Below, in pieces: positions 42,196 to 55,888 of a stretch of 64,000 nt of DNA. Under the pieces are notes generated by a model. It did not search any database. It was not told the DNA's origin and saw only the letters and a list, made by a program, of their open reading frames with translations. Positions within the stretch are counted from its first letter, which is position 1. Every line of letters starts with the position of its first letter. The DNA comes from Salpingoeca rosetta (Eukaryota; Protista; Choanoflagellata): assembly GCA_033442325.1 (NCBI GenBank), contig JAWQFM010000020.1:975388-1039387 (forward strand). Direction: 5' to 3'. A program made the translations under genes and the position numbers.

Positions 42196-43536
42196 ATGAA
42201 CAGCAACACAAGCGCAAGCAAGTCTTCAGCGGCTGCGACATCAAAGCAGCACAGTCAGCATGGCAAAGCAGCAGTCTGCAGGAGCGCAGCCGTCGTGGGC
42301 GGTGGCGTGGCTGGCTTAGCGACTGCCATGGCACTGCGACAGGTTGGCGTGGAGGTGGTGGACGTGTACGAGGCGTACGACGTCTCTGCCGGCGTGGCGA
42401 TTGGTGCGTGGCTCACCATCGCCGTCAACGGCTTGGCGGCCCTGCGTGAGCTTGGCCTTGACAATGCCGTCATGCAGTGCGGCTTCCCATCGGAGGAGAT
42501 TGAGTTCCACAGCGGCAGCGGCAAGCACCTGGGACGGATCCCAATCGGCGGCACCCTGGACGACGGCACCGTCACATGCACGCTTCGCCGTGCGGATCTC
42601 TACCGCGTGCTGCTGGAGGAGGCCAAGCGACGCGGCGTCAATGTGCACTCGCGCAAGAAGCTGGCCCGTATTGAATGGCAGACGACAGCGGACGGCACAG
42701 AGACCAACACAGCGTCCACCTTGACCTTTGAGGACGGCTCGTCCGTTCCTGCCGCAGACCTGGTTGTGGGCGCAGACGGCATCCACTCTGCGGTGCGCCA
42801 GCACCTCAACGCAGACAGGCAGGTGCAATCTCGGTTCATGGGCATGGGCAACACGGGCGGCTTCCTGCCGCACGAGGTTGTGGAGAGCGTCATGGACGCG
42901 CGCACGAAGCAGGAGCTCTCACGCGGCCTCTACCGCATGCTCTTTGGCTACAAGTGCTTCTTCGGCTACACGGTGCACCCTGACACGGGCGACGTGTGGT
43001 GGTTTGCCAACCCTCCGCTCGACCACCCCTTGTCAAAGGAGGAGGCCAAGGCCGCGGACTGGCGCGAGCGCCTGGTGACCATGTTCGCCGATGACGCCGG
43101 GCCCGCGGCAGACGTGATCCACAACACGCCCGAGCACATCACCGTTGCCAGCCAGTACGACCTCCCGCACGTGCCCGTGTGGTACCGGGGCAACGTGGTG
43201 CTGCTTGGCGACGCTGCGCACGCGGCATCGCCGTCGTCCGGCCAGGGCGTGTCGCTCGGCGTAGAGGACGCGGTGGAGCTGGCGCGCTTTGTGCAGTGCC
43301 AGACCACGGTGGCAGATGCCGTGGCCGTCTTTGTGGCGCATCGTCGCCCGCGCGCGCAGCGCGTTGTTGAGTATGGGGCACGCATGAGCAGCCAGAAGGT
43401 GCCTGGCCCCATTGGGCGCTTCTTCAGGGATCTGATCATGCCGTGGATCCTGTGGTTGGTCAAGAACCAGACGCAGGACTGGCTGTTCTCCTACCGCGCA
43501 CGCATCGCAGAGAACACTGAAGAGGCCACAAAGTAG
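42196..43536 (+). CDS. Intronless FAD-dependent monooxygenase (group A flavoprotein aromatic hydroxylase type), 446 aa
   Basis: VVGGGVAGLATA (GxGxxG), RRADL, DLVVGADGIHSAVR (DG motif), VVLLGDAAHAASPSSGQGVSLGVEDA (GD motif). Confidence 0.93.
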   Translation: MNSNTSASKSSAAATSKQHSQHGKAAVCRSAAVVGGGVAGLATAMALRQVGVEVVDVYEAYDVSAGVAIGAWLTIAVNGLAALRELGLDNAVMQCGFPSEEIEFHSGSGKHLGRIPIGGTLDDGTVTCTLRRADLYRVLLEEAKRRGVNVHSRKKLARIEWQTTADGTETNTASTLTFEDGSSVPAADLVVGADGIHSAVRQHLNADRQVQSRFMGMGNTGGFLPHEVVESVMDARTKQELSRGLYRMLFGYKCFFGYTVHPDTGDVWWFANPPLDHPLSKEEAKAADWRERLVTMFADDAGPAADVIHNTPEHITVASQYDLPHVPVWYRGNVVLLGDAAHAASPSSGQGVSLGVEDAVELARFVQCQTTVADAVAVFVAHRRPRAQRVVEYGARMSSQKVPGPIGRFFRDLIMPWILWLVKNQTQDWLFSYRARIAENTEEATK

Positions 43537-44150: not shown

Positions 44151-45124
44151 ATGGCACGGCAGCGGTGTTTGCTGTGGCCGCTGTCATCGCCATGCCGCAT
44201 CACCGCCTCCTGCGTCCACCTTCTCTTTGCTTTGCTTCTGCTGCTGTTGAGCGCACCGGTTCTGACGCCCGCACAAACCACACCCATATCCACAACTGCA
44301 AGTGCAACTGCAACTGCAACCACCACCTCGAATACGACAACGACAACAACAACTGTTGCGTTTTGGCACTGTGCGAGCTCGACATGGCCCAACGGGGATG
44401 AGGATACGCTGGGAGTGTTGGCTGACATGGCGCTGAAGCACGTGCTGGCCGATGAAGCCACGTTGGTCAACACGGTGGACATTAGTGTGCGGCGTGCAGC
44501 GGCGTGGTGGCGTGACGCCGACGCGCAGTTTGGCGGATCTTCGCCAAACATCATCGTCTTAGCGTGCCCAGAGATCCCTCTGCGCTGGCAGCTGCTGCTT
44601 GCCGACTTGCTCGTGGGCAGCAGCAGCAGCTCCTGCGCGCTGGAGACAATGGGCGCGGACGTGGACGTGGCGCATCTCGTGCCGTCTGTCTGCTTCTTCA
44701 CCCTGCGAGCGGATTTCACCTCCATCGCCGACACCGTGATTCGAGCAGCCTCTCCGATCCATCCCGTGTTCATGCTGGTGGACGACAACCAAGTGGAGGC
44801 TGTCCTTGACATTCGGCGCACCATCCTCGCCGAAAGCAACAACGATGACGACCCAGAGGTTCCCAAGCGTGACACCACCATGCCCATCGTGCCAGTCAGA
44901 AACTCGCTCACCGAGACGGTCGATGCCCTGGTCATGTCCGTACCAAGTTCCGTTGTTCTGCTTGCTCGCCCAAGCGCCAACCGTGCTGCCCACCTCAACA
45001 TCGTCGCCACCACCCTCGATGCCAACAAGTCCGTCTTGTGTGTGTGTGTGTAGTGTGTGTGTGTCTGTGTGTGTGTGTGTGTAGTGTAGTGTGTGTGTCT
45101 GTGTGTGTGTCTGTGTGTGTGTGT

Positions 45125-45172
<48 letters not shown>

Positions 45173-45396
45173 TGGAGTGAGTACACGTGTGTGTAATGTG
45201 GGTGTTCGTTGGGGTGCAAAAAACCCCTGTGTGTTGTCGCCCCTGTTGTCCACCCACCCCTGTCCCTCAATATACCTGGGTCATGCGTATATCCGCAGTC
45301 CCATCTTCCTGTGCATGCATTATCTCACCCACACTCGTTCATGCAATCGCACACACACACATACACACACATACACACACATGCACACACACTCAC

Positions 45397-45470
<74 letters not shown>

Positions 45471-46447
45471 CAGGGTGACGCTGGCTGTCCTGGCATGGAG
45501 TGAGCTGGACATTTTGAGGAGCGTTTCGGTATCACCCAACACGTGCTCGGTTCATCTCTTCGATATCGACTGTAGCCTCGCAGAGAAAGCGACGGCCATC
45601 TTGCGCGTGCCCGTGCCTGCAAGCACGAACCCAAGCGCGCCAGAATGGCAACAGTTCCTTTCACAGTTGCTCTCTGATGACGAGAGGGGCAACGCATCCA
45701 CATCCGCCACGGTTGCTGCCGCATGGGACGCGGCACAGATTATCCAGCAATCCATCACAGCGACAGCACAAGATGACCGCCCAGGAAGCAGCGGTCGCTT
45801 GCAGTTTGTGCTCAACTCCACTGGCTTTGATACGACATTCACAGGCCGCGTGCACCTCCGCACTCTCCCCTCCTCGTCATCGTCATCATCGTCATCGTTT
45901 CCGTCACCACTGGCAGCCGTGCCCTCGGCCATGTGGATTGCCACAACAGCCGCCTGCGCTCTACCAGACGCAGGCGGGGTGTGTGCCGCGCAATTCAAAC
46001 GCACGTCTGTTAACGCCACAGGCACAGCACTGCTGTCGTCGACGCTTGCGCTGTTGCCGCAGCGGCTTGTGCTTCGTCTGGCTGTGGCGCTACCACTGAC
46101 TGTGCCTGGGTACAGCACTGGCCGCAGTGCAGAGTGGCGGGCGGCAATCGACGTGGCAGCAGAGGGGCTGGGCCTCACCAACAACGGGCTCGTCACCATC
46201 AAGACAACCGTCTTTGACACCAACGCAGACTGCTTCCAGGTTTGCGGGCGTTGGGAGAGGGGGTAGGGGATGGTCGTGTGGGTTTGTGTTGGTATTTTTT
46301 TTTGTGTTGTAAGAGTGTGCGCGTGCGCTGATGTTATAATGATGGCAACATGTGATGAGATTGCCCTTCCTCTTTGCAATATTGTGAACACTCATGCATA
46401 TTCATACATATTCATACATGTACGTATACGCACGCACACACTCACTC

Positions 46448-46479
<32 letters not shown>

Positions 46480-47538
46480 ACAAACACACACAAACACATA
46501 CACACACTCACAGCTTGGGCGCACGATTGGGCAGCAGTCGTTCCACGCGGTGATTGGTGCCGTGCGGTCGTCGTGTTCTGGTCCGCTCTCCCTCGGCCTT
46601 CGCCCATATGGCGTTCCTCAGGTCTCCTTCGCATCCACGGCCCCATCCCTCTCCAACACCACGCGCTACCCGACGCTGTTCCGCATACCGCCGTCCGACC
46701 TCCACCAGGGGCGTGTGCTTGAGCTGCTGTGTCGCCGCTTCAACTTCACGCACGTGGCCGTGCTCATGCAGGACGACACATACGGGCAGGGCCTCGCTGC
46801 TGCGTTTGCAGACGCGTTCCTCGCCAACAACGGCACCATCACATTCAGGGGCACCATCCCCGCAGGCGACCAGCCCCACTCGCTGTTTCGCGGTCTCCTG
46901 CAGCAGGCGCGCGCGTCCGGGACCAGCGTCATCCTCACGTTTGCTCTGCTGGTCCCGACACGACAAATGTTCGCAGCGGCCGAGGAATTGGGGATGCTGG
47001 GGGAGAACTGGGTGCATCTCACCGTCGACGCAAACACGTTTGCAAACACCGCGTAAGCTCAAAGCACCGCGTTTGCCTTGCATCGGCTCTGCTTTTCCTT
47101 GGCCTCGTGGCTCAAATGTACCGATGGAATTGTGCGCATGGCGTGATTCTGCTTATGTGTTGTGTGCTTCTTCGTTTGTGATCAGGCACAACGTCATGCT
47201 TCCTCACATCCCATACAACACAACACACACACACACACACACACAATCGATTCATGAAACAGGGCGGAGGACACGGTGATTGATGGTGTGGTTGGGGTGC
47301 GTCCACGCACTGGTGCTGGCGCTGTCTATGAAGGCTGGCTTAACTACACCAGCGCTTCAGGCGTACGTAATGGCTGCACATGCCTTGCTTGTTATGCTAT
47401 GTTTGTGTTTCGCATGAGAAACACTTGACGTCCACACTCACGCACACGCCATCAATTGATCTTGTGCTTCTCACGCTTGTGTTGCTCACACCGTTGTGCA
47501 TGCACGCATACACCTTCTCCCTCCCTCTATGTGCGTGC

Positions 47539-47625
<87 letters not shown>

Positions 47626-48111
47626 CGTGCGTGTGTGTGTGTGTGTTTGTGCGTGTGTGTGCACAGGTTGGAGAGGCATTTCGGCGCCGCTTCTCGCTGC
47701 CCACCGGTGATGGCGGCTTCAACCCAAACACGTGAGTGATCGTGTTGTGGCACTACCCCGAGTAATATTTTTTTTTGTGAATTATGCAAGTCGTGCTTCA
47801 CTTGCACACCGCTCTCACTTGCGCGCTTCCACCTGCACACTCACACGCTCACATGCGCTCACACGTTCAACCTGCATTGTTTCACACACCCTTTCAGTTA
47901 CGTCCCCCACAGCCTGGATGCGGTGCAAGTGCTGCATGTTGCTGCAACGCGTGCTGTGGAGAGCAAGGCAACCCTCTCCACCTTCCCGTCGGTCTCCCTC
48001 GTGCGCACGAGTGTTCTCCATGAGTTACAGGCCATGACTGACCCTGCGCTCGGATTTCGCGGATCAACGAGCTCGAACGTGCGCCGCAACCACTGTTGCA
48101 TTGCTGGATAC

Positions 48112-48154
<43 letters not shown>

Positions 48155-50233
48155 TGTGTGTGTGTGAATCTTTCTTTGTTTAAATGTGGGTTTGTATGTG
48201 CATGAGTGGACGAATAATGCCTTGTTGTTCTGCTTGCACTCATGCAGCACACACACACACACATACACATCACGTCTGCGCATGGCATCAATGCAGGTGT
48301 ACTTCTCGCCCGAGGGCGATGGGCGCATCGTGTATTCAATTGCAAACGTCGCCGACAACCTCCTCCTTGGCGTTGGTGTTGCAGATGAGGTCGAGTCGCG
48401 TCTGCGGCTTTCGCTGCAGCAGCCAATTGTCTGGGGTGGTGGGAAACCTGTGCCGCCATCCACATTCTCCGTCGTCAGAAGGTATGCTGGAGTATGTGTC
48501 TGTATGTGTGTGTGTTTGTGTGTGTGTGTGCGCGCGTCTGTATGTGTGTGTCTGTATGTGTGTCTATATGTGTGTCTGTATGTGTGTTTGTGCATCTGTG
48601 TGTGTCTATGATGGAGTGGGAAAGCAAGACTGTCGTTGCACCGCCAACACGTGCGCAATCACTACGTGCGAGTTCATCTGTCTCACAACCTACCATCACC
48701 ACCACCATCATCAATCACCCCCACCCTCCCCCTTTCGAAGAACCATCACGGTTGCGTGCCTTGCGCTTGTGGATGAGAGCGAGCTTGAGGACGAGTTGGC
48801 AGCGGCCTGCACGTGGTCCGCGGGTATCGTGTCCAACCTCAACAACATCGACGTCACCGCCAGCATCATCACGCGTGAGACGGTGCTTGGTGCAGAGGAG
48901 GCAGGTAGCGCCCACACCTCGCTGTTGTCGCTGGAAGCACACATGCGGTTGTGCAACAGGACGCAGGAGTATCTTCTCAATGCCACGCTTGAGAAGGATT
49001 TGGTGGCTGTTGTGGGCGTTGTGCCCTCGCTCTGTCAGCAGGACTGGGCGCCGCAGCTCACCCTCTTGGGGCTGCCGCAGTTTGTCGTGTCATCCTTTCC
49101 TCGCCTCAACCCTTCACCATCAACAACACCGCCAACAGCGTCACAGTCGTCACAGCAAGCGGGCACGGGCAACAGTACAAGCACAACGGGTAGTGGTGGT
49201 GATGACGATGATGATACCAGTGGTGTCGGCGGTGATGGTGGCTTCAATGACGCAGGCGCCAATGACGATGATGGTGCGACGCGCCAGTCGCCGCTGTTCC
49301 TGCTCGATGGCAGCGCGCATCTTCACATTGATCAAGTGCTCCTCGTCCTGCGCAACAACAACTGGACCCGCTTCTCTGTGCTCTGCCACAATACCCTCGT
49401 GCCGCACACGCAGGAACTGATGTCAGTCGCCCGCAACCACGGCTTCAACCCGCTCGGTTTCACACCGGCGCCAGAGGCCGCCACACACAACAGCACGGCA
49501 CTGCAGCTCCTGATGCAGCGTCATCGCACCCTTGACGCAAGCATCACCATCGTCCTCGCTCCCGACTTTCTCCACGCGGACGCTTACTTGCGGGTGTGTG
49601 GGTGCGTGTGTGTTGTGTGTGTGTGTGTGTGTTGTGTGTGCTTATGTGTGTGTGTGTCAGCTTTGCGGTTTCTGCTCTTTGTGTTGTATTTGAACTTGCA
49701 TCGTCTGCAGATGCTTTGCCCTCACGAAGTCCTCATTGTTGCCATCATTCTCACCTCATATGACCACCTCAACTGCACTTTGTCGCTTCTCTGTACTTAG
49801 GCTGCAGAACGTGCCTTCATCACGGGCGAAAATTGGGCGTGGATCCTCGCTTTTGGTAAGAAGCAACTGCTTTGGTCGGCATGCTTGCAAGCAGCAAATA
49901 CATTGATTCCCACGGCCTGCACAACCCTTTCTTCTTCAACTGCTATCAGCAACATACATTGTCCGCAATCACAATCATACACGCGTCAACAATTTACACG
50001 CACTCACGCACAAACACACACACACACACACACGCATACACGACGTGATGCTGCGCAGGGAGCTGGCGTGGCATCCACTTCAGTCGCACTGTCACCTTTC
50101 GCGATGGTGCGTGTACATGACATGTACGCTTGCTTCTGCTGGCTTTGTGTGCTGACCCGAGTTAACGTCTTGATCGCCGCTAGACCAGTGCTGGTGATGT
50201 TATGCTGTCCATCGCATCAATTCCACCACCACC

Positions 50234-50273
<40 letters not shown>

Positions 50274-51739
50274 CCAACACACACACACACACATCCGAAC
50301 ACACGCATGGCGCTAACTCCCAACCCCCAACTTGCTCACATCTCAACACACACGCGTGTACGCCACCATGCGCAGCTGTTGTTGTGCTGAGTCCGCCTTC
50401 AGGCAGCGGCATGGCATTCCAGAACTTCCTGCCGAGCACGTCCACGTCTGCTGGGCGCCTCTTCTCCTTCTCCTTCCAGTCAGCGGGGATTGCAGGCGAC
50501 ATTGGGCCCTCGCTGCTGTCGCTTCGCGTGCATGACGGCATGCTGGTGCTGGCCCGAGTGCTTCAGGATGCAGTGGAGCGTCGACTGATTGACTACCGCC
50601 AGTCCCCTGCTGACCTCCGCGCTGTCATCGTGCACGAGACAAATGCCGCCCTTGACAGCAACCACAAGCAGCAGAACTGCGATGAAGACGGTGGTTTGGG
50701 TTTGCAGCTCACGTCTGGCCTGTGTGTCTCGCGCGCAGACAACTTTGGCCGCGTGCACGACGTGCACACGACTCCCACAGCCAGCGCCAACAGCGCCAAC
50801 AACATCAACACCACCCACACCACCACCACCCACACCACCACCACCCACACCACCACCACCCACACCACCAACAGCACCGTTCACGAGCTGCCCATGATGA
50901 CAGCTGATACCGTGACGGTGCTGGATCCTGGTACGCAGGTGCTGAACGTTGGTGCCGGCGTGTTCACGGAAGCAGGGCGCATTGCGGGCGGCCGCGTCAC
51001 CATCAGCAAGCGCATCATATGGGGTGCTGGTGCCCTGCACCCGCCCAGCGATGTGCCCGTGCTGGTGGCGGAGGTGCTGGTGAAGTATGTTGTCATTGCA
51101 CCGCTCTCCCGTGCGCTGACGGAGCAAGAAGGGCTGCTATACGACCAGCTGGCTTCCATTTCCACCATTGTTCCGTCCCTGAACCAACTGACAGGCTTCT
51201 CCGACACGCTGACAGTCCGCATTTTGCCGGTGCGCCTCAATGTGGACGCTTGTTCCTTCCTCTCCCCGCCAATGCAGCCGGACAATGCAGCCGACATCTG
51301 GGTTGTGGTTGGTCCGGAATCATGCATCCTGTCCATGGGGCGCATGGCGCGCCGCTTCCACCAACCACTGATGGGCGTGGTCACTGCGTACGACATTGGG
51401 CTGTCGCCGCAAGACTCAAACCTGCTGCAACAATGGAGCATGCCTGCAAATGCGTCTCAGGCCGCCAACAGGCCACAGGCGCGTGACGTGACGAGCGGTC
51501 GTGAGGATAACGTGCGTGAAGGTGCTGCGGGCGCCCGTGGAAAGCCATCGCCAATGACGCAACACCGCAGATCAACAGACACTGCTAAATCACCACACAC
51601 ACCTGCGAGCAGCAGCAGCAGCAGCAGCCGCAAGCACGGCAACAATGAGGGCAGCAGAACCAAACGCAACAACAACAACAACAGCAACAACAGCAACAAC
51701 AAGACCCTCAAGCTATCAACCATCATGCACCAGAACACC

Positions 51740-51824
<85 letters not shown>

Positions 51825-53509
51825 GCAGCAGCAATGACGGCAGCAACAGCAGTGACGCTGCTGGCCACGGCGACCAATCGAGTGCGCCAGGGGGCGGGCG
51901 AGGAAGAGGCCGCCACACTCGTAACAACAGGAGGCGTGGCTTCATGCGTGTGTTGGCGGCAGTGACGCACCGCAACCGCAGCAGCCAGAGCACGACCACG
52001 GCAGCCCCCACCACCACCCCCAGATCAGCCACCACTGGCAGCGGACCAAGCAGTGGCAGCACGCTGGCAAGATCGGCATCCATGACTGGAATGGCAACAG
52101 GAAGTGGTGGCAAGGATGGCGCGAAACAAGGCGGTGGCGTGTGCAAGGAGCTTGAGGAGTTTATGCGGGAAGCGAGCGTGCTGTGTCAGATGAAGGACAA
52201 GAATGTTGTCGGTTTCATTGGCGTGTGCACGACGCTGCACCCGTTCCTCCTGGTCACGGTGTACTCTGCAAAAGGGTCACTGCTGTCTCTGCTTCGCGAG
52301 CGCAAGGAATCTCTCAATCCACTTCCGCTGTGGGGAAAACTCATGATGGCGCGCGATATTGCTCGCGGCCTGCGCACCGTCCACCAGAAGGGATTCGTGC
52401 ACCGGTGGGTCTAAGGTTGTGTTTGTGTGTTTGTGTATGTGTGTTTGTTTGTTTGTTTGTGTTTAATTTGTTTGTTTGTTTATGTTTATGTTTATGTTTA
52501 TGTTTGTGTTTGTGTTTGTGTTTGTTTATGTTTGTGTTTGTTTGTTTGTTTGTTTGTTTGTTTGTTTGACGGACGATGTATCCACCTTGTCAATTCGGCT
52601 TCAACTCACAATTCGCATGTTCTGCTTCATGCTCTACTTGTTTTTTTTCGTCGACGGACAGTGATATTGCTGCTCGCAACATTCTCGTGGATGAAGACTT
52701 TGTTTGCAAGGTTTGTTGGTGTGCGGGTGCACTCTGTGGTGAACAAGACCTTGGTCTTGTGGGGTTTGTGGATGCAACCATAGTTTCCTTTGTCACTTCA
52801 TTTCGTGAACACACTTAGTAACCTTGTCTTGCATCCACGCACGCGCATCCGCCTACACTCATCACACCACCAACACCACCTTCATCACGAACACCAACAC
52901 CACTCCGCGTCTGGACTTTTCAGGTCGCTGACTTTGGGCACGCGCGTGCGAAGACCAACGGGCAGTGCCGCGTGACGGATGATCGTGTTGCTGTTGCGTG
53001 GACCGCACCGGAAGCACTGGACACGCGCGTATTCTCCGAGCAGACAGACATCTGGTCATACGGTGAGTTGTGTGTGTACGCACGCAAGTGGTTATGTACA
53101 TGTGTGTGCCGTTTATGTGTGTTTGTGTGTGGACGTGTGTGTGTGTATGTGTGTGTGTACACGTGCACGTACATGTGTGTGTGTGTGTGTTGTGACACGC
53201 TTGCTTTGTGGTTGGCAACATGTCACCTGCTGCTAATTTAATCCTCCTTCAACAACACTGGTTCCTGTTTCATCGTCCCTCCGTCCCCCCCCCCCCCCCT
53301 TGAAAGGCGTGACGGTGTGGGAGCTGTTCAGCGATGGCACGATGCCGTACCTTGGGCTCAAGAACTCCACCATCTTCCGCCTCCTGCAGAAGGGGCACCG
53401 TCTCGGCAAACCAGACGGATGCCCGCGCGACGTCTACATTGTACGATGACATGGCAATGGGGGCAGGTTCAATGGGGTTGCTTTCACACTCTTGCTGCAC
53501 ACACGCGCG

Positions 53510-53572
<63 letters not shown>

Positions 53573-55888
53573 CACACACGCACACACACACGCACGCACG
53601 CACACTGCACACACACACTGCACACATCGCTCATCTCACGTTCTGCGCTTGCTGGTTGACCCGTGTTCTGGTCCACAGCTGATGCTGGCGTGCTGGGCGA
53701 CGGATCCGAGCGAACGACTGTCGTTTGCCGAAACATGCGACATGCTCGACACTGGTGCGTACACATAGTGAATTGGAGACAGATACAGGTTACAAAGATG
53801 TGTCCGTGTTTGATAGGGGAGAGCACAACCACGAACACTGTGACCCATGAAACTCACATAACCCTCAAACTCACACTTCAACACACCCACTCACCAACAC
53901 TCCCCAACACATGCACGCAATCATACACAGCACTGCAAGGGGCGGAGGTCGCGCCGATGGTGAACGAACAGATGCAGGTTGTGGAAGAGAATGTGGAGGC
54001 GTGGTTGCGACAGAGCCAGGCCTCAGCCACCTCCAACACTGACGGTGGTGATGGTGGCGATGGTGGTGACGATGATGACAACGGTGATGGTGATGATCGC
54101 GGCCATGGGCGCACGGACGGCGAATGTGGATGCCATGAGGATAGCGGCACTGCTGGCACCAACACGGGCGAGAGCAGCGGCAGCGTGAACCGCGATGAGC
54201 TCTTCTATGCGGGCAGCGGAGGCGCACGCAGCAGCAGCACCGTTGCAAGCGAGGGCATGAAGCGCAACGCTTCCAGTTGTGTGTCCTTGCATCGCGAGAA
54301 ATATCATCCCCACCTTCACCTCCCTGGCCTTCGCCATGATCTCTCACGCCGCGGCACAGCAACGCCAAAGGCGCTCTTGAACGTGCACCTGCAGATCCCA
54401 ACACGCGAAAGCAACGCATCCAGTGCTGGTTCCAGCAAGCGTGGAAGTGCCGTGCAGCTGCACCCTGATGTCAAGCAATCACCGCCTCACGACTTTGATC
54501 GCCACGCATATGTGGATTTGTTTGAGACGCGCGAGACTGTTGTTGCCAGCAACAGCTCTTCACACAACGCAAGCCAGGTTGGTGGTGGAAGACTGTGCGT
54601 GTGCACGCTCGTGTGTATGTGTGTGTGTGTGTATACGCTTGTGCACAGCTGAGCTTCCTGTTTTGCTGCCTTTGTGTGCTCCGCACAACGTTTGATCTAC
54701 CTTACTGGTGGTGATGCTTGTCACTTACCCTGCTGCGACGTTATCGTCCGTGTGTTCACTGCTCCTGTTGTGCGTGTGCGTGTGCGTGTGCGTGTTGCGC
54801 CATTGCGTCTGATAGCGGTCCTCTCAGGCGGTGGAACAAGAGGAGAGACACGACGCGACTTCAACGGAGGAACGCAGCGATCGCGCACAGTCGCAGCAAG
54901 TCATTCGCGTAGAGACTGAATCAGCTGATGATGATGACGACGATGGTAGCGATGATGAGAACAGCGATGGTGTTGGTAGTGATCATGATGCTGCTCGGCG
55001 TCCTGCCAGCCGTGATGATCGCGACGGACGGAGGAAGAGCAGTGTTGCCGGTACTGGACAAATTGCGATTGTGGCTGTTGAAAGCGAGGAACACAAAGAC
55101 GCCAGTGACAGCGACAGCGATGAGCTGGACGTTGATGACATGCTGACAGCAACAACACCAGCAAGCAGCAGAGGCAAGCTGGACACCATTGACGAAAGCA
55201 GCAGCGATGGTGACATCAGCCGTGATGGCGAACACACGCAAGGCAACTGCAGTGGGGTGCCGAAGTCAAGGAGCCACAGGGAACAGCACCAACGCCGCCA
55301 ACACGGAGTGGATTTCAGCTTCTCGCGGCACCCGTTTGTGAAGACGAATGCAGTGGTGAGCGACTCTGCTGCTTCCAGCTCCACACTCGCCAGCGTCATG
55401 TCAGTGGCTGCACTGGCCACTGCGCCTGCTGACAATGTTGCTGCGACGTCCCCTGATGATGTGGATGGCGGTGATGTGCGTGGCGATGATGACGAGTTGT
55501 CTTACGCTGCAAAGGACGCGAGGGCGAGCAGTGCATCTCTTTCACTGATGCAGATGCACACGGATCACGTCACGCCCGTGCGGTATGCCCGATCAATGCC
55601 GCATCACACGCCAGCGGCGCAGCAGAAGCAGCAGAAGCAGCAGAAACAGCGCAAGCGGCGACGAAAGCAGCAAGTGCCGACGCTTGGCAAGTCAGCAAGC
55701 GATGGGTCCATGTCGGCAAGGCCACTTTCTTCGGCAGTGGAGGTGGATACGCCCGTGCTCGCGTCGATGCTGCAGCAGACGCTGCACGACAGCTCACAAC
55801 GTACGCGATCAGGTGTGTTTGGTTTGGTTTGTTTGTTTTGGTTTGTTTGTGCAGTGTTGCGATGCACTGTGGCTCCTCGTGTGTCAGA

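Follow-up and report, generated by a model that had tools for sequence, protein, structure and literature searches.

A 64,000-nucleotide stretch of the genome of the choanoflagellate Salpingoeca rosetta (assembly GCA_033442325.1, contig JAWQFM010000020.1, positions 975,388 to 1,039,387 of the forward strand; hereafter the window, numbered from its first letter) carries a single transcribed gene that encodes Venus flytrap (VFT) modules in tandem, followed by a tyrosine kinase (TK) domain. This gene probably (estimated probability about 0.8) descended from a tandem-VFT receptor tyrosine kinase (RTK), its product now being devoid of a transmembrane (TM) helix, dead as a kinase and unable to signal as a receptor kinase. 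A preliminary description of this DNA, made from the sequence alone, had proposed an RTK for sensing amino acids or nutrients. For the S. rosetta copy this proposal was not supported, as a TM segment, the VAIK lysine and the GxGxxG motif were all absent. Below, modules 2, 3 and 4 of the protein are referred to as VFT-B, VFT-C and VFT-D.

Loss of the transmembrane helix and the ATP site

An exhaustive phmmer search with the exon encoding the ANF-type domain retrieved, as best full-length relative (44% identity), the uncharacterised protein P0006 of Microstomoeca roanoka (EP00043_P019213), a complete transcriptome open reading frame (ORF) of 2385 amino acids (aa) with Pfam matches to ANF_receptor (411-756) and to a full TK domain (1758-2015). 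A word search with P0006 800-1700 returned the query itself only. This orthologue is colinear with the S. rosetta protein over modules 1 to 3, the beginning of module 4 and the kinase domain (30% identity for module 1, 54% for VFT-B, 45% for VFT-C and 69% for the kinase), and its VFT-B pocket residues are identical. It differs in having a complete VFT-D, a TM helix, the Gly-loop GHGAFG and the VAIK motif, all four of which are lacking in S. rosetta. Indeed, tblastn of P0006 against the window gave colinear matches for P0006 75-1368 and 1792-2018, and no counterpart of P0006 1369-1791 was retrieved anywhere in the 64 kb. In M. roanoka, the latter segment comprises about 75% of VFT-D, followed by the TM helix at 1702-1728 (Kyte-Doolittle 3.2), a juxtamembrane segment and strands beta1 to beta3, with the Gly-loop and, on beta3, VAIK. 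At this place, the S. rosetta gene contains:

51401-52141, + strand: low-complexity replacement, residues 1566-1812 (~247 residues), delimited by tblastn, global alignment and composition
52094-52123, + strand: degenerate Gly-loop remnant, GSGGKD, identified by alignment with eight related kinases

The replacement counts 49 Asn, 38 Ser and 26 Gly, and includes a poly-Asn (CAA)n tract (51667-51857). It is in frame with both flanks inside a single ORF (50198-52411), and among the RNA reads covering both flanks no splice joint was found inside it or elsewhere in exon 11.

The single TM helix that an RTK carries between its ectodomain and its kinase is missing from the S. rosetta protein, a Kyte-Doolittle hydrophobicity scan having found the N-terminal signal sequence only. 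Such a helix was present in all eight relatives scanned, as well as in P0006. Similarly, the kinase does not display the features of a competent enzyme, as its loop reads GSGGKD and VAIK is absent, though the alphaC Glu, HRDIAARN, DFG and APE are kept. About 23 residues, including the beta3 strand with the VAIK lysine, are missing after the Gly-loop remnant, and the Pfam PK_Tyr_Ser-Thr match on the exons at 52.1-53.1 kb begins only at profile position 43. In the alignment, GxGxxG and VAxK occurred in eight out of eight related VFT kinases, the S. rosetta gene alone being without them. With neither an anchor nor normal ATP binding, the protein cannot work as a transmembrane kinase sensor.

These lesions were checked against public reads and contigs placed on window 48650-54649, including run X1, a 2022 DNA run, and run X6, an RNA assembly, as its contigs skip introns with GT..AG ends. 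The X1 DNA and X6 RNA contigs were identical to the reference over 50841-51599 and 51842-52404/52410, indicating that the low complexity after the VFT-D remnant is real, as are the decay of the Gly-loop and the deletion of beta3. In particular, no difference from the reference was seen at the Gly-loop and the beta3 deletion in X1 record 5, which is an independent DNA contig, or in X6 record 12, a spliced RNA contig. Stranded RNA reads covered 50450-51649 and 51850-52449.

Gene structure and transcription

The gene consists of 17 exons on the + strand (44151-55985), with GT-AG ends for all introns and a frame that is open without a stop:

44151-45028, 45474-46239, 46514-47052, 47263-47362, 47667-47731, 47898-48078, 48297-48481 and 48741-49593, + strand: exons 1 to 8
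49801-49855, 50059-50106, 50376-52404, 52662-52710, 52924-53062, 53307-53440, 53679-53754, 53931-54577 and 54816-~55985, + strand: exons 9 to 17

The spliced model was assembled by hand with a script, from 16 exons up to 54577 and a last exon from 54816, using P0006 as a guide, and it is colinear with that protein. Up to exon 16 it encodes 2248 aa, and about 2637 aa if the last exon is read through. In the annotation of S. rosetta GL832974.1 (assembly GCA_000188695.1), the gene starts at window position 44151 as well and its product counts 2625 aa, 12 fewer than the read-through gives; where the last exon ends on its 3' side is uncertain. The ORF at 50384-52414, which had been described as running from the third and fourth VFT modules into a tyrosine kinase, was present, and the HRD, DFG and WTAPE motifs were recovered in the spliced model.

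RNA contigs and reads backed the junctions 49855>50059, 52710>52924, 53062>53307, 53440>53679, 53754>53931 and 54577>54816; the junction 52404>52662 was also RNA-backed, as deduced from the record positions of the contig. One X6 contig of 3127 nt joined 52404>52662>52710>52924>53062>53307>53440>53679>53754>53931 and continued to 54577, which places the long C-terminal tail on the same mRNA as the kinase exons. The loose end of this spliced contig after 54577 points to 54816, and the joint 49855>50059 was carried by a separate X6 contig. An apparent stop at 53765 is skipped through the splice donor at 53754. Furthermore, stranded RNA-seq reads lay on the predicted exons and none in the introns, showing transcription of the gene, at low depth, with correct splicing. 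Separate VFT and kinase genes joined by misassembly, a possibility considered in the preliminary description, were not encountered, since both parts form one gene in the M. roanoka transcript.

The region is typical intron-rich eukaryotic DNA. Long microsatellites of (CA)n or (TG)n occur in nearly every intron (for example 45037-45468, 46431-46512, 47530-47661, 48113-48166, 52420-52568 and 53498-53618), and these tracts also interrupt the short-read contigs of the public runs. At its end, the last exon when read through runs into a hydrophobic stretch rich in TG and then into (CA)n (55880-55985). In view of the shorter annotated product, this hydrophobic end is probably an intron or an untranslated region.

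Domain modules

The following domains were delimited in the S. rosetta protein:

44151-44273, + strand: signal peptide; no other part of the protein is strongly hydrophobic (Kyte-Doolittle scan)
44355-46062, + strand: module 1, N-terminal alpha/beta module, residues 69-489, aligned with P0006 24-388 (30% identity)
46063-48741, + strand: module 2 (VFT-B), residues 490-905, canonical ANF_receptor domain over five exons (Pfam, hhalign)
48742-51070, + strand: module 3 (VFT-C), residues 906-1455, diverged, with low-complexity loop inserts (profile search, hhalign, model of the orthologue)
51071-51400, + strand: module 4 (VFT-D remnant), residues 1456-1565, first ~110 residues only (32% identity to P0006 1262-1368)
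52142-53747, + strand: tyrosine kinase from helix alphaC to its end, five exons (Pfam PK_Tyr_Ser-Thr positions 43-258)
53748-55985, + strand: long, acidic, low-complexity C-terminal tail (spliced RNA contig through 53931-54577)

About four VFT modules after a signal peptide had been announced in the preliminary description, with boundaries that agree with the present ones to within a few bases. This was confirmed for modules 2 and 3 and for the truncated module 4, but not for module 1, which gave no significant match to a VFT profile. The canonical nature of module 2 was evident from a Pfam ANF_receptor match on exon 46514-47052 alone (E 1.6e-32; 113 bits versus a cut-off of 25.4) and from hhalign against ANF (100%, E 3e-65, 359 columns). 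Its nearest solved structures were T1R3 (E 1.7e-15) and the VFTs of metabotropic glutamate receptors (mGluR6/8).

Module 3, described as degenerate, was examined with a custom ANF profile built from 435 domains of other search matches, both orthologues being left out. This hidden Markov model (HMM) matched the S. rosetta module in three colinear pieces, the main one with an independent E-value (iE) of 2.6e-12, and the M. roanoka module with an iE of 1.7e-17. In addition, phmmer with module 2 recovered module 3 (iE 5e-8) and hhalign gave 98.7% (E 1.5e-16); against Pfam, the module of the orthologue stayed under the cut-off (21.1 bits). An AlphaFold2 (AF2) model of the M. roanoka module, computed from a 71-row alignment that included the S. 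rosetta exons, reached a pLDDT of 82.6 and a pTM of 0.84; as ANF domains had served as seeds of this alignment, the model leans to that fold. Foldseek placed this model closest to GABA-B ectodomains (4mqf_A, E 6e-17), then to the N-terminal domains of ionotropic glutamate receptors (iGluR) and to natriuretic-peptide receptors (NPR), on all of which it superposes. As judged from the profiles and the model, module 3 is a true diverged VFT with a periplasmic-binding-protein (PBP)/VFT fold, and the suspicion that the modules would not model as PBP folds was thus not borne out for this module.

Two low-complexity loop inserts occur in VFT-C, namely an acidic Gly-rich run (49050-49230) and a perfect 15-nt repeat coding for THTTT units (50802-50878). 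Both are missing from the M. roanoka orthologue.

Module 4, already recognised as truncated, is homologous to the start of VFT-D of the orthologue over its ~110 residues only. The complete module of M. roanoka is a VFT (custom ANF HMM, iE 9e-22; hhalign 96.6%, E 6.7e-10). The kinase is complete from alphaC on, with the alphaC Glu, an intron-split HRD of HRDIAARN (52400-52665), DFG (52930-52938) and the A-P-E of WTAPE (53005-53013). No Pfam match was found for the C-terminal tail.

Module 1 had no Pfam match at E <= 10, and hhalign against the ANF profile gave a probability of only about 1% (1.3%). Similarly, nothing significant was obtained by hhalign of this module against modules B, C and D and the N-terminal module of Salpingoeca urceolata, or by a search of its HMM against all fetched proteins. 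An AF2 model on a 3-row alignment was unusable (pLDDT 39) and returned nothing at E <= 0.001 in Foldseek; its matches with flavodoxin and receiver domains were dismissed as meaningless. The neighbours of module 1 by ESM language-model features were Peripla_BP_6/ANF clusters (score 0.95-0.96), and a colinear order of VFT-like motifs was seen, judged by eye only. As these two are the sole pointers, a VFT origin of module 1 is unproven.

Amino-acid-type pocket in VFT-B

The motifs GAVRSS, SFAST, PPSD (PSDxxQ in the preliminary description), TYG and TVDA of module 2, put forward in that description as equivalents of the amino-acid pocket of class C of the G protein-coupled receptors (GPCR), indeed fall in the corresponding mGluR1 columns of an HMM-guided alignment:

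46568-46570, + strand: Ser567 (S165 of mGluR1)
46637-46639, + strand: Thr590 (T188)
46697-46699, + strand: Asp610 (D208)
46781-46783, + strand: Tyr638 (Y236)
47027-47029, + strand: Asp720 (D318)

In mGluR1, the equivalents of these five residues hold the alpha-amino-acid moiety (PMC3703292, citing Acher and Bertrand 2005). Phmmer of the ANF exon against mGluR6/8 placed GAVRSSCS on GA(S/A)ASSVS, SFASTAP on SYASTAP, PPSD on VPPD and TYG on NYG; the D318 column comes from the HMM alignment only.

The same S/T/D/Y/D signature was found in VFT-B of S. rosetta, M. roanoka, the environmental proteins P0029 and P0033, and S. urceolata, and as S/T/D/(Y or W)/D in three out of four single-VFT choanoflagellate receptors, the single-VFT receptor of M. 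roanoka having Asn at the last position. VFT-C and VFT-D of the tandem-VFT members were without pocket residues in the alignable columns, save an isolated Asp or Tyr in single members; in S. rosetta, module 3 kept neither Y236 nor D318, its aligned pocket positions. The announced division into one pocket-intact module and degenerate ones thus recurs in the orthologue and in the two environmental relatives. On these alignments, a pocket-intact module among pocket-less ones is a conserved trait of the family, and not a decay peculiar to the S. rosetta gene. VFT-B may still bind an amino acid.

Related VFT kinases

P0029 (a Logan contig) and P0033 (an ENA contig) resemble the S. rosetta gene in that each has a partial upstream module, three tandem VFTs and a TK, and in the restriction of the S/T/D/Y/D signature to the first full VFT. 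They differ in that all three VFTs are well conserved (VFT HMM scores of 378/170/156 and 324/156/127, respectively) and that neither the TM helix nor the kinase N-lobe is missing; both proteins are cut by contig ends. Furthermore, single-VFT, TM-containing TK receptors were retrieved from S. rosetta (XP_004995117.1, 'TK protein kinase', 989 aa; P0062), M. roanoka (P0092), Hartaetosiga balthica (P0104) and S. infusionum (P0070), and a two-VFT receptor from S. urceolata (P0063). These choanoflagellate VFT-TKs resemble the S. rosetta gene in their ANF-type VFT, in the S/T/D/(Y or W)/D signature of most of them and in a kinase that groups with that of S. rosetta, and differ from it by their one or two VFTs, their TM helix and their complete kinase. 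In a tree of 23 kinase sequences, the choanoflagellate VFT kinases clustered together (support 87/71), apart from InsR, ALK, ROS and MET and from P0210, a VFT-TK that is perhaps a metazoan Venus kinase receptor (VKR); the deep nodes of this tree were weak.

The top phmmer matches, annotated as Polypterus senegalus 'CASR protein, partial' (P0001-P0005 and P0009), were left out of account, since they are probably models in which tandem genes for class C GPCRs have been strung together. They carry 4-10 ANF stretches, and P0004, the one scanned, several NCD3G domains too. Three tandem ANF stretches also occurred in the uncharacterised proteins P0007/P0151 of Pocillopora verrucosa (LOC131795997), for which a Pfam scan found no kinase domain, and P0018 of Rhodelphis marinus, indicating that tandem VFT arrays exist outside the choanoflagellates.

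Present state of the gene

The ancestral layout, shared by a small clade centred on the choanoflagellates and intact in M. roanoka, would have comprised a signal peptide, an alpha/beta module, VFT-B with its pocket, the pocket-less VFT-C and VFT-D, a TM helix, a TK and a disordered tail, and closure of VFT-B upon ligand binding would presumably have activated the kinase across the membrane, as in VKRs. In the S. rosetta copy, the part from mid-VFT-D through the TM helix has been lost, with low complexity rich in Asn, Ser and Gly in its place, the Gly-loop has decayed, and beta3 with the catalytic lysine has been deleted. Having a signal peptide but lacking an anchor, the product would pass into the secretory pathway and be secreted, together with a kinase domain that cannot bind ATP normally.

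That this product is still made, as a soluble, kinase-dead multi-VFT protein with a VFT-B that perhaps binds an amino acid, is tentatively, and slightly, favoured over a young unitary pseudogene. In the latter case, which is a reasonable possibility too, loss of the TM helix and the lysine would have abolished function, the open frame would reflect a recent lesion and the transcript would be residual. Two independent disabling lesions in the signalling core, low-complexity expansions within domains, a low RNA depth and a longer maximum-likelihood (ML) branch speak for such a pseudogene. However, the reading frame is intact over ~2600 codons and all 16 introns have kept their splice sites, indicating that the lesions either arose recently or are borne by a protein that is still of use, and the pocket residues have stayed identical to those of the orthologue. 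In addition, substitutions are symmetric, the lineage-specific counts for S. rosetta versus M. roanoka being 10-12 versus 7-12 in the kinase, 30-31 versus 27-31 in VFT-B and 34-37 versus 24-31 in VFT-C; in these outgroup-based Tajima-type counts all chi2 values were below 3, without a rate excess for S. rosetta. A further step, whereby the S. rosetta RTK was converted to a secreted, kinase-dead amino-acid-binding protein acting as a natural soluble decoy or scavenger, within a clade that couples the VFT-B pocket to two pocket-less VFTs, is doubtful.

Some points weigh against the account of a TM-less, kinase-dead and still translated product. Its translation and secretion are read from the sequence, and ligand binding by VFT-B from five residues only. 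The terminal branch in the ML kinase tree measures 0.33 for S. rosetta versus 0.16 for M. roanoka, a hint of relaxation. The hydrophobic end of the last exon, if coding, could act as a C-terminal anchor or tether. Finally, every short-read contig, whether from DNA or from RNA, is interrupted at the (CAA)n tract (51599-51842), where continuity depends on the reference assembly and a collapse could have occurred. Such a collapse might hide about 1 kb for the rest of VFT-D and the TM helix, so that the protein would be anchored with a kinase still impaired, and repeats of this length are classic collapse points. This explanation is improbable nonetheless, as about 90 non-VFT low-complexity residues follow the VFT-D remnant before the tract, in a verified contig, and about 95 more lie between the tract and the Gly-loop, whereby a hidden segment would need to resume VFT-D after an interruption. 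Moreover, there are no runs of N, and a word search with P0006 1369-1745 gave no fragment of the protein in any public assembly, which is weak evidence. The loss of beta3 lies outside the tract and is real in either case, so that a collapse would not rescue the kinase. Least probable is a working multi-VFT RTK for amino acids or nutrients. The intact VFT-B pocket signature, the intact HRD, DFG and APE motifs, the expression and correct splicing of the gene, the lack of a clear rate acceleration and the complete receptor layout of the orthologue would all fit it, but the protein has no TM segment and a truncated VFT-D, and its lack of the VAIK lysine and of GxGxxG was verified by the independent DNA and RNA contigs.

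Comparison with known VFT receptors

The VKRs of invertebrates likewise join an ANF-type VFT outside the cell to a tyrosine kinase, and their activation by L-amino acids has been reported (PMC3703292). In contrast with the S. rosetta gene, which encodes several VFTs and no TM helix, they possess a single VFT, a single TM helix and an active kinase of the InsR type. Also, VKRs keep only Ser165 and one Arg of the eight-residue motif (PMC3703292), whereas five positions are kept in VFT-B, and the S. rosetta kinase does not group with InsR sequences or P0210 in a small tree. The gene thus does not show the layout that characterises VKRs, a metazoan orthology group, namely a TK of the InsR type combined with a single VFT and a single TM helix. 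As suggested earlier, the gene may be either convergent with or related to VKRs: its architecture resembles theirs, and its kinase clusters with choanoflagellate VFT kinases and not with InsR or P0210. With the VFTs of class C GPCRs (mGluR, T1R, CaSR and GABA-B), VFT-B shares the alpha-amino-acid residues, and these gave its best sequence matches in the PDB. Class C GPCRs, iGluRs and NPRs differ from the S. rosetta gene, which is without a seven-transmembrane domain, an NCD3G cysteine-rich domain, a guanylyl cyclase or a channel, and in which the VFTs stand in tandem on one chain.

S. rosetta 'RTKS' and Monosiga brevicollis UTK12 have been noted for a VKR-like architecture (Vanderstraete et al. 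2013, PMC3703292; Dissous et al. 2014, PMC4026697), such choanoflagellate receptors having so far been mentioned only in passing, as unpublished observations. The RTKS family, classified on its kinase domain, has five S. rosetta and three M. brevicollis members (Fairclough et al. 2013), and the InterPro tables of that study list several S. rosetta genes with ANF and kinase domains (PTSG_04631, PTSG_05453 and PTSG_00092). ANF is also listed among the domains of holozoan TKs (Suga et al.). PTSG_05453 was considered as locus tag, its coding sequence being ~7.85 kb (back-calculated from counts and fragments per kilobase per million), but it was not adopted, as its neighbour PTSG_05454 (a GH2 hydrolase) was not found beside the gene. 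A literature search found no description of tandem-VFT kinases or of the TM-less S. rosetta copy. Choanoflagellate VFT-TKs have thus been known since 2013, and what is new here is the tandem-VFT subfamily, also present on two environmental contigs, and the crippled copy.

VFT-kinase receptors are candidates for small-molecule sensing in the closest unicellular relatives of animals. In the tandem-VFT subfamily, a single pocket-keeping module is conserved across the members, and in VFT-B none of the five core alpha-amino-acid residues of the pocket has been lost, whereas animal VKRs keep fewer. The crippled copy sits in S. rosetta, a genetically tractable model; amino-acid-sensing tests in this species would be better aimed at intact single-VFT paralogues (such as XP_004995117.1), or else at the M. 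roanoka protein. The gene itself is a clean example of an RTK that loses its anchor and ATP site while the rest stays conserved.

Neighbouring genes

Directly upstream of the VFT gene, a single-exon gene on the + strand (42196-43536) codes for an FAD-dependent monooxygenase (FAD_binding_3, E 3e-28), with an exact match on GL832974.1. On the other side, a second tyrosine-kinase-like gene (58407-59410, minus strand) is convergent with the VFT gene and probably extends to ~63 kb. This was recognised from a Pfam PK_Tyr_Ser-Thr match (E 3e-8) on the ORF 58874-59410 and from tblastn matches of the P0006 kinase at 58407-58625 and 59081-59248.

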